Of a stretch of DNA of 64,000 nt, positions 210 through 44,088 are shown piece after piece (position 1 is the stretch's first letter; each line of letters opens with the position of its first letter). The notes under the pieces are model-generated. The model had not been told where the DNA came from and did not search any database. It worked only from the letters and a program-made list of their open reading frames with translations. The DNA lies in assembly GCA_964200185.2 (NCBI GenBank), contig CAXNAD020000001.1:56358-120357 (forward strand), in the 5' to 3' direction. This DNA comes from Choristocarpus tenellus KU-1152. Taxonomy: Eukaryota; Protista; Phaeophyceae. A program made the position numbers and the translations under genes.

Positions 210-2741
210 TTAATTTTTTAATAAATTATTTATAAATTGATTGAAAATAATACGACCAGGAGTAGTACGAATATATTTAATTAAAATTTCATTATTAATT
301 GTTTCTTTTTGTTGTAAATTATTATACAGTTGTAATTTTGTTTTATTATTAAATTCAATTGTTTTAGAAAAAATTAATTCACTATTTAAGATCAAATTAT
401 TTTCACAACGAACCCAAATAGATGAATGAATATGTAATTTTTTTTGCTTATATGCAATAATTACTTCTTCAAAATTAGAAAAATAATGATTACTACCTTT
501 TAAATTGGCTTTATTTTCAGTTGTTAAATAATAAAAACCTAAAACCATATCTTGTGTTGGTTGAAGATTAGGTTGACCTGTAGCTGGTGATAAAAAATTA
601 TTTGGTGATAATAAACATAATTTTGTTTCAAGTTGAGATTCATAAGATAAAGGAATATGTACAGCCATTTGATCGCCATCAAAATCTGCATTAAATGCTG
701 GACAAACTAATGGATGTAATTGAATAGCTCGACCTGCAACTAATATTGCATCAAAAGCCTGAACTCCTAAACGATGTAAAGTTGGAGCTCGATTTAATAA
801 AATCGGATGATATTTTATAATTTGTTTTAATAATTTTGATATTAATCCCTTATCACGATAAATAATTTGTTTAGCTCTTTTAATAGTATGAACTAAATCC
901 GTTACTAATAATTTATTTATTAAAAATGGTAAAAATAATTCGACTGCCATTTCATAAGGTAAACCACATTGATTTAATTTTAAATTAGGACCTACAACAA
1001 TAACTGTTCGTCCAGAATAATCAACTCTTTTTCCTAATAAATTTTGACGAAATCGACCTTGTTTTCCTTCAATGATATCAGCTAATGATTTTAATGGTCG
1101 TTTATGTACATCTAAAATTGTTGGACCTCGTTTACCATTATCTATTAATGTATCTACTGCTTCTTGAATTAATCGTTTTTCTGTACTAATAACTAATTCA
1201 GGAGCATTCGCATATAATAATCTAGACATTCTTTTATTTCGAATAATAATTTTTCGATAAAGATCATTTAAGTCAGAACTAACAAATTTCCCATTATCTA
1301 ATTGTATTAATGGTCTTAATCCAGGAGGTAAAACAGGAAGATATTTGAAAATCATCCATTCTGGTCTGGTTTGCGTTATTAAAAAATTTTCAAGTAATCG
1401 AATTCGTTTAACATGTGCATCTCTTTTTGGACTATATATAGTTGCAAGCATTTTAGAACGACTATATTCAATTTCTATATTTAAATCCATATTTTCTAAT
1501 GTTGTATAGATATATTGAGTTTGATCTATATAATTAGTTTTCATAGGATCATTTCTATCTACATTTTCTAAATCATAAAATTTATCATCAATTTTATATT
1601 TTTTTCGTGTTTTTTTAATAGTATTATTTAATTCATCTTCAATTTCATCAAATTGATCAAGATCATTATCAACCGTTTGATTCATATTTTTAGTAGTTTT
1701 ATTATTACTATTTGTTTCAATAGTTTGATTAATATTAATAGTATTTTTTATTTTTTCAATACTTTTTTTTTTCGAATAAATATAATTCTCATAAAAATTA
1801 ATAACGTTACTTTCATTTTCATCTAATTCAGTAAATTGGTTTTCATTCTTGGTAGTATTATTAATTTCAAATTCATTTTCTTGAAATCCCTCTCTTTCAA
1901 ATTCCTCTCTTTCAAATTCCTCTCTTTCAAATTCCTCTTGTTCTTCAAAATCAATAATACCAAAATCTTCTTCAAATTCATTCTCTTCAAATTCTTCTTC
2001 TTGAAATCCCTCTCTTTCAAATTCCTTTTGTTCTTCAAAATCAGTAATACCAAAATCTTCTTCAAATTCATTCTCTTCAAATTCTTCTTCTTGAAATCCC
2101 TCTCTTTCAAATTCCTCTTGTTCTTCAAAATCAGTAATACCAAAATCTTCTTCAGTAAGAGGATCATCTTCTAACTCATTAATATTAAAATTATGATTAT
2201 CAATTTCTTCTTCATCATAATTATCTTCATCAATTTCATTTGGATTTTCTTTTAAAATTTCAATATTAATATTTTCATCATTTTTTATTAATTCATCAAC
2301 ATTTTCAATTTCATTATTATCTTGTTTTCCATAAATCATTTCTTCAATATCTTTTAATTTCCATCCTAAAAGATTTGATAAAATACTTGGATATCCTTTT
2401 AAATACCAAATATGGACAACCGGAGCTACCAATTTAATATATCCCATTCTATGTCGGCGAACTCTCGATATTGTTACTTCCACGCCACACTCTTCACAAA
2501 TTTTACGAAAATAGCTATTATGTTTATATTTGCCACAAGTACATTCCCAATTTTTAACTGGTCCAAAAATTCTTTCACAAAATAATCCTCCTTTTTCTGG
2601 TTTTAATGTTTTATAATTTACTGTTTCAGATTTAAGAACTTCACCTACTAATTCTCCATTAGGTAATTGTCTTTCTCCCCAGTTTTTAATTTTTTCTGGT
2701 GAAGCTAGTTTAATATTAACATAATCAAAATTTTTTATCAT
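210..2741 (-). CDS. rpoC1: RNA polymerase beta' subunit with large acidic insertion
   Basis: GGLFCERIFGP, Zn-finger cysteines, NADFDGDQMAVH catalytic motif. Confidence 0.98.
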   Translation of the reverse strand: MIKNFDYVNIKLASPEKIKNWGERQLPNGELVGEVLKSETVNYKTLKPEKGGLFCERIFGPVKNWECTCGKYKHNSYFRKICEECGVEVTISRVRRHRMGYIKLVAPVVHIWYLKGYPSILSNLLGWKLKDIEEMIYGKQDNNEIENVDELIKNDENINIEILKENPNEIDEDNYDEEEIDNHNFNINELEDDPLTEEDFGITDFEEQEEFEREGFQEEEFEENEFEEDFGITDFEEQKEFEREGFQEEEFEENEFEEDFGIIDFEEQEEFEREEFEREEFEREGFQENEFEINNTTKNENQFTELDENESNVINFYENYIYSKKKSIEKIKNTININQTIETNSNNKTTKNMNQTVDNDLDQFDEIEDELNNTIKKTRKKYKIDDKFYDLENVDRNDPMKTNYIDQTQYIYTTLENMDLNIEIEYSRSKMLATIYSPKRDAHVKRIRLLENFLITQTRPEWMIFKYLPVLPPGLRPLIQLDNGKFVSSDLNDLYRKIIIRNKRMSRLLYANAPELVISTEKRLIQEAVDTLIDNGKRGPTILDVHKRPLKSLADIIEGKQGRFRQNLLGKRVDYSGRTVIVVGPNLKLNQCGLPYEMAVELFLPFLINKLLVTDLVHTIKRAKQIIYRDKGLISKLLKQIIKYHPILLNRAPTLHRLGVQAFDAILVAGRAIQLHPLVCPAFNADFDGDQMAVHIPLSYESQLETKLCLLSPNNFLSPATGQPNLQPTQDMVLGFYYLTTENKANLKGSNHYFSNFEEVIIAYKQKKLHIHSSIWVRCENNLILNSELIFSKTIEFNNKTKLQLYNNLQQKETINNEILIKYIRTTPGRIIFNQFINNLLKN
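1866..2154. repeat. In-frame tandem repeat inside rpoC1: ~90-bp unit in nearly 3 copies, plus 15-bp sub-units
   Basis: tca(a/g)taataccaaaatcttcttca recurs at 1951, 2041 and 2131; ctctctttcaaattc repeated in tandem at ~1890-1935; encodes EEDFGITDFEEQEEFEREGFQEEEFEENEF. Confidence 0.95.
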
Positions 2742-14317: not shown

Positions 14318-14698
14318 TTATTTTAATGGATTAGGTATTTCTTTTGTTGGAGAAAGGAATTGACCCATAAATACATTATTTATTCTTAATTTTAACCAAA
14401 CAATAAATAATTTATCTGTTGAAACTATTACAACTGGATTCTTAGGGATTTTAATTTGAGGATGTTGTTTTTTTATTATATTAATAAAATTTGGTTTTTC
14501 TAAAATCCAATGATTAAAACTTATTTTTGTTCGACGCGTATATTGAGACCTTTCTCGTAACATTTCCTCAATAGGTTCATGTTTTAATAAAAATTCTTCA
14601 CTTGCTAAAATATAAAAATATTTTATTGGTTTTATTTTTATTTTTTGTTGTATAATTTCTTTATTTTTAAAAGAAATATTATTTTTTTGATTTATCAT
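14318..14698 (-). CDS. ycf54: Ycf54, auxiliary factor of the Mg-protoporphyrin monomethyl ester cyclase
   Basis: YFYILASEEFLLKHEPIEEMLRER and VSTDKLFIVWLKLR motifs. Confidence 0.85.
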   Translation of the reverse strand: MINQKNNISFKNKEIIQQKIKIKPIKYFYILASEEFLLKHEPIEEMLRERSQYTRRTKISFNHWILEKPNFINIIKKQHPQIKIPKNPVVIVSTDKLFIVWLKLRINNVFMGQFLSPTKEIPNPLK

Positions 14699-32453: not shown

Positions 32454-35400
32454 ATGGTCTTTGAACGTTTTACAGAGCGCGCGATACAAGCAGTAATGAG
32501 ATCACAAGAAGAAGCAAGACTTATTGGACATAATTTTGTTGGAACGGAGCAAATTTTATTAGGATTAATGCGTGAAAAAGAAGGTATAACATGCCGTAAT
32601 ATAATGAAATTTAATGTTAGTCTTAATGATTTAAGATTAGAGGTAGAAAGAATAATTGGCCGTGGAAAAGGGTTTATTTCTTTAGAGATTCCATTTACTC
32701 CAAGAGCCAAACGTCTTCTTGAAATGTCAGTAATACAATCAAAACAATTAAATCGTAGTTATGTAGCACCTGAGCATCTTCTTTTAGCAATACTGAATGA
32801 CCAAAGTAGTATTTGTATAAATATATTGCAAAATCTTGATGTCGATATTGCAAAATTAAAAAAAAATGTATTATTTGAATTAGGTGAAATAACTGATGGT
32901 TACAATTCAAATTATGAAAATAATGGTATTATTGATGCCGAAATCGTAGTTGATTATAATAATGATTATACTATGAATAATAGAAATATGAATCTTATTC
33001 AAGAACTTGAAGAAAATTTCAGTGATAATGAAGCTGAAGATGTTTTTATTAATGATAATATTCTTTTAGGGCGAAATAAAAAATTTACTGGAAATGAATA
33101 TGAATATGAGAACGAAACTAAACTAAATAGTGACAATGAAAGTGAAGATGATCTTAATGACAATAAACCGAAAAAAAAACGAATATCAATGTTAGATTTT
33201 ATATATGAAAAAAAAGATGAATATATTATAAAAAGTAAAAATCTTTTTTCTAAGAGATTTAGAAAAACTTTGAATTTCTTAGAGAGAAAAAATGACGATG
33301 AAAATGAATGGGAAGAAGAAAATAAAACAGATATTGAAAATTATCCTGGAACTGAAAGTGATAATTATGTTGAAAGTGATATTGAAAGTGATATTGAAAG
33401 TGATATTGAAAACGATATTGAAAACGAAAAAAATAATATAGAAAAAAATAGTGAAGATGACGATTATAAACCTAAAGATTTATTTTTATATAATGATTTT
33501 GATGAAGAAGTTTTTAATAATCCAAATTTACAAGAATTTACTAGTGATTTAACTGCTGATGCCAAAGCAGGAAAATTAGATCCAATGATCGGTAGAGAAA
33601 ATGAAATTGAACGTGTAATACAAATTTTAGGTCGTCGTCGAAAAAATAATCCTATTTTAATCGGCCCAGCTGGGGTAGGAAAAACAGCGGTAGCTGAAGG
33701 TTTAGCACAACAAATAATTGATAAAAAAGTACCAAGACAATTACATAATTATAAAATTATTGTTTTAGATATAACTTTATTACTTGCAGGAACAAAATAT
33801 CGAGGTGAATTTGAAGAAAGATTAAAATTAATTTTGGATGAAATGAAAAGTTTTCCAAATATAATTATTGTAATTGATGAAGTTCATACTTTAGTTGGTG
33901 CTGGATCTGCAGAAGGAGCTTTAGATGCTGCAAATATTTTAAAACCAGCCTTAGCTCGGGGTGAATTGCAATGTATAGGTGCAACAACAGTTGATGAATT
34001 TAGACAATATATCCAAAAAGATCCAGCTTTAGAACGTCGTTTTCAACCTGTTTGGGTAAATGAACCGAGTATTGAAGAAACCATAGCTATATTAAAAGGA
34101 CTTCGAATGAGTTATGAACATCATCATCAAGTAAAAATTGAAGATGAAGCAATAGAAGCAGCTGTAAAATTAGGTTCTCAGTATATAAATGACCGTTTTT
34201 TACCAGATAAAGCTATCGATTTAATTGATGAAGGAAGTTCAAGAGTAAGACATATTAATTGTAATTTACCTTTAGCGGTTCAAACTTTAGAAGGAGAATT
34301 ATCAAATATTATATCTAAAAAAGATAAATCTGTTCGTGAACAAAATTATGAAAAAGCGGAAATTTATAAAAAACAAGAAAAAACAACTCGTGGTCATATG
34401 GCTTCTATAATTCGAGTTCAAGCAGAAGATAGAGCAGAAGCAGGCATGCCAGATGGCGTGCTTGATACATTAAAAGTAGATGCAGATGATATTGCTGCTA
34501 TTGTAGCAGTTTGGACTGGTGTTCCAGTAACAAATATAACAGAAGATGAAAATAGTAGATTAATTGATTTAGAAAATCTACTTCATACAAGAATTATAGG
34601 TCAAAAAGAAGCCGTTAGTGCTATTGCTAGAGCTGTTCGACGAGCTCGATTAGGTATGCGTGATATGAATCGACCAATTGCAAGTTTCTTTTTTTCAGGA
34701 CCAACTGGAGTAGGTAAAACAGAATTAACAAAAACATTAGCATCTTTTTTCTTTGGAGCAGAAGATGCTATGGTACGTTTAGATATGTCTGAATATATGG
34801 AACGTCATACTGTAGCAAAATTAATTGGTTCACCTCCGGGATATGTTGGTTATAGTGAAGGTGGAATATTAACAGAAGCTGTAAGACGAAAACCCTATAC
34901 TCTTATTTTATTTGATGAAGTAGAAAAAGCTCATGCAGATATTTATAATTTATTATTACAAATTTTAGATGATGGTCGATTAACTGATTCACAAGGTCAT
35001 ACAGTAGATTTTACAAATACAATTATAATCATGACATCTAATTTAGGATCAACAGAAATTGATGAACAAGAAGTTCAACAAGAAGCTGAACAAAAAAATG
35101 AAAAAAGACGAGAAAAAGAAACAAAAAGACTTCTTGATGTATTAGATAAAAACCATGAAAAAAGAAATAATAATAATATTATTTCAAATTATGAGGAAGA
35201 TGAAAATCTAGAAAAAAATGAAGAAAAAAAATTAACACCATATGAACAGTTACGTGAAATTGTTATAAAAAGTTTAAAAAAATATTTTAGACCTGAATTT
35301 TTGAATCGTTTAGACGAAATTATTGTTTTTGAACAATTAACAAAAGAACATATAACGAAAATTGCTGATATTATGGTTAAAGATTTAATTAAACGTGTTC

Positions 35401-35855
35401 ATGAAGAAAAAAATATAACACTTAATTTAAGTGAGAAAATGATGAATCTTTTAGTTGAAGAAGGTTTCGATCCACAATATGGAGCTCGACCATTACGTCG
35501 AGCAATTGTTAAATTAATTGAAGATAATGTTTCTCTTGCTTTTTTAAGATATATGAAAGAAAAAGAAATGAAAAAAAATCCTGTTACTGTTAGTTTAGAT
35601 GTTGATTCAAAAAATCAAGTTAAAGTTCATATAATAGAAACTGTTATTCCTTCGATTGAAGAAAAAGATAAAAATATAGAAAGAGAAAAAGAACAGAAAA
35701 AAAATAATTATGTTAAACCAGTATTATCATCAGATGATATTCAAAGAATTATACGAGCTGCTGCTGATAAAGGAATTAAGAGATTAGAAAAAGAAAAACT
35801 AGAAAAAAAACGATTAGAAAATAAAGAACAAAAAATTAAAAATAATTTTTTATAA
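32454..35855 (+). CDS. clpC: Clp/Hsp100 ATPase ClpC, enlarged
   Basis: Clp-N repeats ([16 protein letters not shown]); Walker A motifs GPAGVGKT and GPTGVGKT; GARPLRR. Confidence 0.96.
33353..33428 (+). repeat. 12-bp in-frame tandem repeat (ESDI/ENDI) in the clpC linker
   Basis: gaaagtgatatt x3 followed by gaaaacgatatt variants. Confidence 0.85.
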
Positions 35856-39923: not shown

Positions 39924-40883
39924 ATGGAAACTTTGAATCATACGACTATTAAAAAAATAAAAACATTTATTTTAATTTTAAGTATTATAATCAGTCAATC
40001 AATAATATTTATTAATAATTCAGAAGCATATCCAATTTATGCACAACAAGCTTATACAAATCCTCGCGCAGCAAATGGTCGTATAGCTTGCGCAAATTGT
40101 CATTTAGCAGAAAAAGCAGTTGAAATAGAAACACCTCAAGCTATTTTACCAAATACTGTTTTCGAAGCAACAATCAAAATTCCTTATAACAAAACTGCTA
40201 AACAAATTTTATCTAATGGTCAATTAGGTAATCTAAATGTAGGTGCAGTTGTAATTTTGCCCGAAGGTTTTAAATTAGCACCTAAAAATCAAATTTCTAA
40301 AGAAATTCAACAAAAAAATAAAGGTGTTTTTATTTCTCCTTATAGTTCAACACAAGAAAATATTTTAGTTGTTGGACCTATATCTGGTGATCAACACCAA
40401 GAAATTATTTTTCCTATTTTATCGCCAGATCCTGAAACAAATAAAAAAGTTAATTTTTTAAAATATCCTATTTATGTAGGAGCGAACCGAGGAAGAGGAC
40501 AAATTTATCCTACAGGTGAAAAAAGTAATAATAATATAATTACTTCTTCTTTAAATGGTCAAATTTTAACAATTCAAACATCAGAAAAAGGAGAAAAAGT
40601 TTTAAATTTATTAAATTCTGAAGGACAAGAAATGAAACAAGTTATTCCGAAAGGATTAACATTAATTGTTTCAGAAAAAGATATTATTAAAATTGATCAA
40701 CCATTAACAAAAGATCCTAATGTTGGTGGTTTTGGGCAAACGGATAAAGAAATTGTTTTACAAAATTCTAATCGAGTTATTGGTTTTATTTTATTTTCTT
40801 TTTCTGTTTTACTTACCCAAATTTTCTTTGTACTTAAGAAAAAACAATTTGAAAAAGTTCAACTTGCCGATTTTGAATTCTAA
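39924..40883 (+). CDS. petA: Apocytochrome f
   Basis: YPIYAQQ...CANCHLA, PNVGGFGQ, KKKQFEKVQ. Confidence 0.98.
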   Translation: METLNHTTIKKIKTFILILSIIISQSIIFINNSEAYPIYAQQAYTNPRAANGRIACANCHLAEKAVEIETPQAILPNTVFEATIKIPYNKTAKQILSNGQLGNLNVGAVVILPEGFKLAPKNQISKEIQQKNKGVFISPYSSTQENILVVGPISGDQHQEIIFPILSPDPETNKKVNFLKYPIYVGANRGRGQIYPTGEKSNNNIITSSLNGQILTIQTSEKGEKVLNLLNSEGQEMKQVIPKGLTLIVSEKDIIKIDQPLTKDPNVGGFGQTDKEIVLQNSNRVIGFILFSFSVLLTQIFFVLKKKQFEKVQLADFEF

Positions 40884-40947
40884 AAAACTAGAAAACAAAT
40901 TATTTATAATATTTAATTTGTTTTTTATTTTTTAATATATAATAAAC

Positions 40948-41207: not shown

Positions 41208-43007
41208 ATGATAAATACTCAAATACCTCCAAAAAAAAATTTACTTGTTAATAATAATTATATGTCTATTAATGATAGATATAATAAAAACGATGTAACA
41301 ATACAAAAAGATTCACAAGAAACAATACTTGCACCTCGTTTTTATACGACAGATTTTGAAGAAATGGCAAATTTAAATATTGAATCTAATAAACTAGAAC
41401 TTCAAGCTGTTTTAAGAGAATTTGAATTTGATTATAATAAAGATCATTTTGTGCGAGATAAAGAATTTAAAAAACCTTGGTTAAATATTTTTGATTATGA
41501 GACTAGAAGATTATTTATAGGTTTTTTACAGCGCTCATGTACAGCTGAATTTTCTGGATTTTTGCTTTATAAAGAATTATCAAGAGCTTTAAGAGAAAAA
41601 AATCCCTTACTAGCAGATGGATTTGCATATATGTCACGTGATGAAGCAAGACATGCAGGTTTTTTAAATAAATCGATGTCTGATTTTAATGTAACACTTG
41701 ATTTAGGCTTTTTAACTAAAAACCGAAAATATACTTTTTTTCCCGTAAAATTTATATTATATGCAACTTTTTTATCTGAAAGAATTGGTTATTGTCGTTA
41801 TATAACAATTTATCGTCATTTAGAAAAAAATTCTAAATATCGTATTTATCCAATTTTTAAGTTTTTTGAATCTTGGTGCCAAGATGAAAATCGTCATGCA
41901 GATTTTTTTGCTGCAGTTTTGCGATCACAACCACATTTACTTACAACTTTAGAATCAAAACTTTGGTGTAGATTTTTTTTATTGTCTGTTTTTATTACAA
42001 TGTATATCAATGATTTACAAAGAGCAAATTTTTATGCAACTATTGGTTTAGATGCAATAAAATTTGATGTCTTTGTTATTAAAAAAACTAATGAATTTTC
42101 AGGACGATTATTTCCAGTTATTTTAGATTTAAAGCATCCAAAATTTTATACTTATTTAAATAGATTAGTAAAAATAAATAAAGAATTATTAGAAATTGAT
42201 TTACTTAAAAAATATTTTAATGATAGTTTTAAATATATAAATTATATTTTTTTAAATTCAATTCCAAAAAATAATAATAAAATAAATAATTTGAAAAATT
42301 ATTTTCCTGCTATTTTTTTAATATATTTAGAAAATTGTTTAGGAAAAAAATTAACTGAAAAATTCATTAATAAATTTTCTATCACATTTTCTAAAAAATT
42401 AAATGATAATTTAGAAAATGATTTTGATATAAAATCAAACCGTTTAAATTTACGAAAATCAAAAGAAGAAAAACGAATAGAATTATCGGACAAATTAATG
42501 GATTGTTTACATATAACATTAAATGAAGTTTTTACAAATAATTCTATTAATGAAATAATAAGTGAGCTAAACAAGGATGTTAGTTTTGATTTAAGTGAAA
42601 AATTATCGCAAATTTTGTTAGGTAAATTAAAATTTGATCTTAAGGATACGAATAATTTACCACAAAATTTAAATCAAAAAATACAAGATGATATTCTTTC
42701 TTCATATTTTCGTAATGTTTATATGAAATTTATAATAATGAAAAATCAATACATTATAAACCAATTAAAAAAAGAATTTTCAATAATCTTAGAAAATGAA
42801 CTTGTTAAAATTATTCCTACCAAATTTGGTAATTCAATAAAACAATTAAATTTATATAATAATAAAAATAAATTTTTTGAAAACATTTCTATTGAACTTC
42901 AGAAAAATTTATCAACTAATTTGTTAGTTTTACTAAAAAATAATAACATTATTGAAACAGAAAAAAATACTGAAATAATAACTATTTTTAATAAAATTTT
43001 TAATTAA
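41208..43007 (+). CDS. acsF: Mg-protoporphyrin IX monomethyl ester cyclase: catalytic part plus ~270 aa foreign tail
   Basis: [25 protein letters not shown], and DEARH / DENRH di-iron motifs. Confidence 0.93.
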
Positions 43008-43113
43008 CGAAAAAATTAATATTATTAACTTTTTCGTTAAAATACTAACAAATAAAAAAATTTAATTAATTAGATAATATTACTAATAAATAAAAATCTA
43101 TATTACCAATAAT

Positions 43114-43428
43114 ATGATGCAAGAAAAAAACAATCCCTTTCAACAAATATCTAATAATTTAGTAGATGAACAAAATTTATATAATTTATTTAATCAATTA
43201 ATACAAAATGAAAAAATCTCTGTTCCTTATTCTAATAATTCTACTGTGATTAAAAATAATCTAATATTAGCTTTAATTACAATACGAATATCAATAATTA
43301 AAGTTTTTTTTTCATTTTTATTTGTTTTAATTAAAGTACCAAATTATTTAAATATACTTATTACTTTAATTAAACTTTTTTTACTAAAACCTATCGATTC
43401 ACAAAAAACATGGAATAAAATATTATAA
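43114..43428 (+). CDS. Separate ORF ending in an AcsF-like C-terminus
   Basis: KVPNYLNILITLIKLFLLKPIDSQ resembles the terminal K-x-P...L-x-L-Y/F-L-x-K-P-I-D segment of AcsF. Confidence 0.6.
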   Translation: MMQEKNNPFQQISNNLVDEQNLYNLFNQLIQNEKISVPYSNNSTVIKNNLILALITIRISIIKVFFSFLFVLIKVPNYLNILITLIKLFLLKPIDSQKTWNKIL

Positions 43429-43488
43429 TATTAATTTCATGTTATACTATATAATAAAAATTTTTTAATATAAATTTAATAATTATTT

Positions 43489-44088
43489 ATGATATCAAAA
43501 ATTCAAATAGGTAAAATGGCTCCGGATTTTGAAGCGACAGCTGTGTTTGATCAAGATTTTTGTAAAATTAAATTATCTGATTATCGTAAAAAAAAATATG
43601 TTATTTTGTTTTTTTATCCATTAGATTTTACATTTGTTTGTCCTACTGAAATAACGGCGTTTAGTGATCGTTTCAATGATTTTTTTGTATTAAATACTGA
43701 AATTTTAGGAATTTCAGTAGATAGTGAATATTCCCATTTAGCATGGCTTCAAACTAGTCGAGAAACCGGGGGATTAGGAGATTTAAATTATCCTTTAATT
43801 TCAGATTTAACTAAAAAAATTAGTTCTTCATATGAAGTATTAATTGATTCAGGAATTGCTTTAAGAGGTTTATTTATTATAGATAAAGAAGGAATCATAC
43901 AGTATTCAACAATCAATAATCTAGATTTTGGTAGAAATGTTGATGAAGTGCTTCGAGTATTACAAGCTATCCAATATGTTCAAGAAAATCCAGATGAAGT
44001 TTGCCCAGCAAATTGGAAACCAGGAGAACAAACAATTAAAGCTAATCCATTAGAAGCAAAAGATTTTTTTGCTTCTTCAAATGAATAA
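43489..44088 (+). CDS. ycf42: 2-Cys peroxiredoxin (Ycf42/Bas1)
   Basis: [24 protein letters not shown]. Confidence 0.96.

Follow-up and report, generated by a model that had tools for sequence, protein, structure and literature searches.

AcsF is the enzyme that closes a ring in chlorophyll synthesis, and each of its 118 retrieved homologues of 340-380 aa is one chain. The plastid acsF of Choristocarpus tenellus, an early-branching brown alga, differs: the core is separated from the last helix by about 1.05 kb that contain a stop codon, a hairpin, a spacer rich in stops and a change of frame, and the core carries a 250-aa orphan tail. The reading preferred here, with a probability of roughly 0.5, is that acsF was split by fission within a surface loop that had expanded between its last two helices, giving a two-chain cyclase. 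The 64,000-nt stretch of DNA analysed (the window; all positions below are numbered from its first letter unless stated otherwise) corresponds to G000:C1:56358-120357 of a 164-Mb assembly.

Genomic Setting and Pathway

The window has a G+C content of 26.6% and contains plastid genes and a bacterial-type rRNA operon; the published plastome of C. tenellus (NC_085297) is 120,428 bp with 26.5% G+C (PMC13280774). A trnL(UAA) gene at 45340-45651 (minus strand) contains a group I intron (RF00028, 65.9 bits at 45423-45629) with tRNA exons readable on either side; the gene is not called by ARAGORN, and a comparative table lists 0 introns for the Choristocarpus plastome (PMC13280774). A 499-aa ORF at 23196-24695 (plus strand) has no NCBIfam match at E<=1e-5.

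The auxiliary cyclase subunit Ycf54 is encoded in the same plastome as AcsF, which is one of the likenesses to single-chain systems; ycf54 lies at 14318-14698 (minus strand) and its PF10674 match of 83.6 bits, above the cut-off, is located at G000:C1:70711-70980. In oxygenic phototrophs the cyclase activity of AcsF depends on Ycf54 (PMC7319587). The genes chlN, chlL and chlB are also present and intact, and the apparent retention of the pathway that the first-pass annotation had read from these four genes is borne out; their integrity indicates that the pathway is in use. No second acsF is found in the 164-Mb assembly, where the candidate for a nuclear back-up copy was rejected as a chance-level match (E 0.06). 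With the pathway genes intact and no other acsF, this photosynthetic alga needs a working cyclase from this locus.

The first-pass annotation suggested a comparison with sister taxa. In the sister genus Discosporangium acsF is uninterrupted and encodes a single chain of 353 aa; a gap of 145 bp separates it from the genes prx, rpl35, rpl20 and ilvH. The downstream order is the same in Choristocarpus, a second likeness to single-chain loci, and the insert is therefore specific to Choristocarpus. Two other genes of this plastome are also enlarged when measured against NCBIfam profiles. RpoC1 (210-2741, minus strand) has 843 aa against a profile of ~620 positions, with residue 408 falling on profile position 190, and ClpC (32454-35855, plus strand) has 1133 aa, with residue 358 falling on profile position 155; each contains ~200 extra in-frame residues, located before NBD1 in ClpC. 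Large in-frame expansion is thus a habit of the plastome. They are comparable to that of acsF and likewise rich in N, K, I and L, but their frames are continuous whereas the acsF frame is interrupted.

The AcsF Core

ORF1 (41208-43007, plus strand) is a 599-aa frame that joins an AcsF core to an orphan extension; it is on record in the protein collection from a 120,357-bp NCBI contig. The catalytic core, part 1 of acsF, occupies residues 1-349 (41208-42254) and includes the penultimate helix together with the opening turns of the last-helix region. Residues 24-336 match positions 12-323 of the 361 in NCBIfam model NF010172 (477.6 bits; cut-off 391), residues 31-332 match positions 3-303 of the 337 in TIGR02029 (439.2 bits; cut-off 192.5), and a rubrerythrin-like helix bundle (PF02915) is matched with an E of 1.4e-38. 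The first-pass annotation had noted both di-iron motifs as intact, and the two ExxH motifs are indeed kept (E146/H149 and E227/H230) along with two further glutamate ligands (E114 and E191); all six ligands lie in invariant columns. The core shares 70% identity with residues 8-330 of Discosporangium AcsF and ~70% with the AcsF of other brown algae, and the AcsF part of ORF1 matches the acsF product recorded for C. tenellus at NCBI and in UniRef at 100% identity; in identity, ligands and profile scores it resembles a single-chain AcsF. As both model matches stop short of the end, the last ~35 model positions are absent from ORF1, and no one chain covers the full models; the remainder is found in ORF2, in another frame.

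The end of the homology was placed near residue 330 by the first-pass annotation. The homology itself holds, but its end point seems to lie further downstream, at residue 349 (nt 42254), to judge from residues 334-349, which match Discosporangium AcsF 315-330 with a score of 49 and still resemble the start of the last helix. This score is reached by 1 of the 16,973 16-mers in window ORFs of at least 100 aa, namely by residues 334-349 themselves. The orphan extension is accordingly ~250 aa rather than the ~270 aa first proposed.

The C-Terminal Piece

ORF2 (43114-43428, plus strand) is a 104-aa frame that differs from the frame of ORF1, as the first-pass annotation had stated. Its N-terminal part (residues 1-66; 43114-43311) is an orphan, Q/N-rich sequence that begins ATG ATG, and residues 67-104 with the stop (43312-43428) form part 2 of acsF, containing the conserved C-terminal helix and tail. 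The assignment of the last ~30 aa to the AcsF C-terminus, proposed from inspection and open to failure on alignment, proved correct: BLASTP aligns residues 57-101 with Discosporangium AcsF 309-350 (E 1e-11), and the C-terminal part aligns end to end with 31 homologues, keeping the invariant Trp and ending at the identical stop position. A profile of 74 positions, running from the conserved LFPV motif to the C-terminus, was built from 118 AcsF homologues; ORF1 matches its positions 1-37 (E 5.5e-13) and ORF2 its positions 37-73 (E 1.2e-12), so that the pieces complement each other exactly. The Discosporangium segment 315-330, which ORF1 residues 334-349 resemble, is also matched by ORF2 residues 69-81; thus a short ancestral stretch may be present on both sides of the insert, as far as these alignments indicate.

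Over 31 codons the ORF2 helix differs from Discosporangium with a pN of 0.22 and a pS of 0.51, against 0.18 and 0.46 for the ORF1 core, in which the last windows have a pN of 0.24-0.36; judged by these differences, the helix has evolved like the remainder of the protein. ORF2 codons 1-66 (74 counting upstream) are without a stop, which has a probability of about 4e-4 to 8e-4 under local composition, and the other frames over this part contain 3-11 stops. No homologue of ORF2 was found in a search among proteins of 57-182 aa. A Shine-Dalgarno-like motif is absent before ORF2; such a motif is present in just 11 of 41 surveyed genes, hence the survey is uninformative. A promoter scan, with 68 sites against 57 expected, is likewise uninformative in such AT-rich DNA.

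It is conceivable, although unlikely, that ORF1 alone is the working enzyme, with or without its tail, and that ORF2 is an untranslated or useless 3' remnant which has not yet decayed. ORF1 would suit such a role in that it keeps every metal ligand, exceeds both curated AcsF cut-offs even without the C-terminus and retains, in residues 334-349, a likeness to the start of the last helix; in addition, the public protein collection has no gene call for ORF2. However, the C-terminal ~35 positions with their invariant Trp belong to both curated AcsF models, and in DNA of ~15% G+C ORF2 still has its ATG, 104 codons free of stops and the stop of the ancestral gene. The excess of synonymous over non-synonymous differences in the ORF2 helix, as in the core, is also unexpected of a remnant. 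If the break were recent, ORF2 might owe its open state to a once-continuous frame; the spacer, described below, does not make the break look very recent.

The Extension, Hairpin and Spacer

The orphan extension (42255-43007, plus strand) continues in frame from the AcsF core for 250 codons to a TAA stop at 43005-43007. None of these codons is a stop, whereas the other forward frames contain 35 and 43; with a first-order Markov model based on the composition of the extension, such openness has a probability of about 8e-12. The first 80 of the open codons precede any internal Met. No homologue was found by a word-indexed search, by an exhaustive HMMER search of 1.84 billion representatives or in the ESM Atlas, and no Pfam domain is present. 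AF2 predicts an all-alpha fold at low confidence (mean pLDDT 51). The insert has no large internal repeats and no second copy in the window or in the 164-Mb assembly. Three candidate origins or relationships were rejected. The extension is not supported as tandem copies of the AcsF C-terminal region: its 'IYLENC' match to Discosporangium is equalled by 449 of 2000 shuffles, and profile domain scores are below 0. Similarity between the extension and the N-terminus of ORF2 is not significant (248 of 2000 shuffles). A repeated mobile element is contradicted by the single-copy state, in the window and the 164-Mb assembly, of the insert and of the palindrome described below.

The end of AcsF homology is a slippage-prone junction (42210-42253, plus strand) made up of a 21-nt tandem duplication at 42210-42251, reported by TRF with a period of 21, 2 copies and 80% matches, and a T7 run at 42247-42253. 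Short slippage duplications thus flank the insert, as a second one (18 nt x2) lies at 43343-43377.

A near-perfect 18+18-nt palindrome (43004-43040, plus strand; arms 94% complementary) begins at the ORF1 stop and would form an RNA hairpin with a dG of -10.4 kcal/mol (z -5.3), which 0 of 200 shuffles equal; it has no further copy in the window. Hairpins like it are found after petA (z -4.5) and ilvH (z -5.1), but not after ORF2 or prx. Those after petA and ilvH (40883-40933 and 45302-45336) are AT-rich and strong, are located at or adjoining the stop codons, and are probably inverted repeats that stabilise 3' ends, resembling the one at the ORF1 stop. A gene-end type of hairpin after ORF1 with none after ORF2 counts in favour of ORF2 as a relic, while the likeness of the ORF1 hairpin to those of petA and ilvH also counts for the preferred reading of loop fission. 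The spacer (43008-43113, plus strand) is 106 bp in length, and three-frame translation confirms both the ORF1 stop and the presence of stops in all three frames claimed by the first-pass annotation. There are at least four stops in each forward frame; no single indel therefore restores one ORF, and the break does not look very recent, which speaks against a relic that has yet to decay.

Fidelity of the Sequence

If the locus were misassembled, the true gene could be one continuous ORF of ~700 aa or a normal acsF. Errors are common in DNA this rich in A+T and in homopolymers, and two assemblies give one T-run different lengths, but such an artefact is scarcely credible given the public contigs. 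A Logan contig from X4 (2,547 nt, depth 41) has 0 differences from window positions 41961-43500; X4 may be the assembly's own data, while the marine metagenome X5 is independent but shallow. Short contigs from X5 extend over most of 41920-43500 and show 4 listed substitutions but no indels, and one of these contigs spans 42984-43134, which includes the entire spacer. The substitutions are D432N, K521E and a synonymous change at I527 in the extension, and A53V in ORF2. Since public contigs show the same stops and the same spacer, a simple error of assembly is improbable, and the number of stops per spacer frame argues in the same direction; the suspicion that the stops are read errors, raised as a possible refutation by the first-pass annotation, is contradicted as far as assembled public contigs show.

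Marine metagenomes contain sequence near-identical to window positions 41920-43500, with 42% of words in X5 and small shares in X6-X8, and the 4 listed substitutions fall in ~1.3 kb. Choristocarpus carrying this split, either of the same population or of one very close to it, therefore occurs in environmental samples.

The T-run on which the assemblies disagree is that of the junction. The RefSeq protein YP_011005525.1 (WAM62388.1; acsF, P0001, 337 aa) follows ORF1 up to the T7 run (42247-42253), diverges exactly there and ends in the short tail that a T8 run would give. With eight T residues the core would end five codons later at a normal-looking length, the extension would be out of frame, and the 250-codon frame would be separate or untranslated, leaving a locus in three pieces. 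The position of the homopolymer exactly at the end of homology lends this reading something, but it is judged very improbable: a frame open for 250 codons, with no internal Met in the first 80, is expected only if it is read from upstream, and the X4 contig, which alone properly bridges the run, has no difference there. A contig from X5 that ends 5 nt past the run is gapless, although it is not a proper bridge. The RefSeq 337-aa acsF appears to be of normal length but is without the true C-terminus, and it hides both the 599-aa ORF and ORF2; annotations of this kind feed plastid phylogenomic matrices.

Possible Removal as an Intervening Sequence

The flanks of the insert would join as an AcsF of normal length. 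The first-pass annotation offered removal at the RNA or protein level as its alternative. An unrecognised intervening sequence of ~1.05 kb, extending roughly from 42216/42255 to 43281/43332, would be removed from RNA to give an AcsF of ~355-370 aa, and the in-frame ORF would then be a reading frame of intron type that runs on from the preceding exon, an arrangement known from some organellar introns. Organellar group I and group II introns may carry an ORF fused in frame to the upstream exon, and the layout of acsF resembles them in its succession of exon, ORF, stop, short non-coding part and next exon. The would-be 3' part also folds somewhat better than shuffles (z -2.7), although the folding scores of the flanks are modest (-2.7 and -1.9).

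Despite this likeness the locus differs from such introns in several features. No Rfam family, group I and group II included, matches 42000-43500 at E<=10, in agreement with the earlier remark that intron motifs are not seen; the same library, through RF00028, recovers the trnL group I intron. The group II features sought in addition are also absent: there is no GUGYG-like 5' end in 42200-42270, and the ORF is without a reverse-transcriptase or maturase domain. It has likewise no LAGLIDADG, GIY-YIG or HNH domain and no homologue of any kind, and the element is single-copy. The gene-end hairpin stands at the ORF1 stop, and 66 ATG-initiated open codons precede the ORF2 helix in the downstream frame, continuing into the downstream piece; an intron would not need them. 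The 15-billion-protein collection contains no ~360-aa product at least 90% identical to ORF1, which is weak evidence. Support for removal from RNA was thus not found, and the explanation is considered improbable. More speculative again is that the ~1.05 kb represents an intervening sequence of a novel kind, with neither group I nor group II features, that is removed from RNA or bypassed in translation to give a single-chain AcsF, with the 250-codon ORF encoding an unknown type of intron-associated protein; this would be a very remote prospect.

Structural Prediction for the Two Pieces

A PDB sequence search returned no experimental AcsF structure, as also stated in a 2026 review (PMC13297055). 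The AF2 model of Discosporangium AcsF (mean pLDDT 81) features a helix at residues 294-313, a loop at 314-318 and a last helix at 319-339; on this model the insert is located in or beside the loop, before the last helix. The C-terminal region is predicted at a pLDDT of 94-97 and packed on the core, which would make a dispensable, relic C-terminus less plausible.

The structure prediction of two chains proposed by the first-pass annotation was made with ORF1 residues 1-352 and ORF2. The predicted complex puts the ORF2 helix back on ORF1 with an ipSAE of 0.71, against 0.00 for the best control; the ipSAE mark applied is reached by 51 of 78 solved complexes and by 2 of 108 mismatched pairs. The runs have at least 64% of contacts in common and the partner has a pLDDT of at least 54; ORF2 residues 63-97 are modelled in contact with ORF1 residues 251-263 and 298-338. 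Because such a model largely re-recognises two pieces of one fold, it indicates compatibility of the chains and not binding in the cell.

Proposed Fission of an Expanded Loop

Fission into neighbouring collinear ORFs is known from plastid and cyanobacterial genes: rpoC has become rpoC1 and rpoC2, and rpoB is split in some green algae. The acsF locus resembles these fissions in that two adjacent ORFs on the same strand cover one ancestral protein, cut in a surface loop; it has the adjacency, collinearity and complementary coverage of a split gene, and both frames are open (P 8e-12 for the extension and about 8e-4 for ORF2). Unlike those fissions, it has a small piece that is mostly one helix and a cut placed within a large lineage-specific insertion instead of between domains. 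The literature yielded no account of a split acsF, nor of the acsF of Choristocarpus in particular.

Under loop fission an AT-rich in-frame insertion would have grown at the slippage-prone site in the loop, kept open by the need to read on into the essential C-terminal helix; a stop-rich segment of ~100 bp bearing the gene-end hairpin would later have interrupted the insertion. The locus would then give two products: a ~70-kDa AcsF core fused to a helical orphan tail of 250 aa, and a 104-aa protein in which the last ~38 residues are the AcsF C-terminal helix. The proposal in the first-pass annotation of an in-frame insertion that grew and then broke is consistent with the complementary ORFs, their openness, the loop site, the parallels in rpoC1 and clpC and the model; its further step to a two-subunit cyclase, which presumes that ORF2 is expressed and that the two chains reassemble, is inferred only, as is the order of events.

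On this reading the locus illustrates how gene fission can be the outcome of runaway in-frame expansion in an AT-rich plastome. If the two-chain reading is true, a helix supplied in trans beside a 250-aa add-on is a natural fragment-complementation experiment; the C-terminal helix of AcsF would be separable from the catalytic core, and the locus would be a handle on the assembly of the cyclase with Ycf54.
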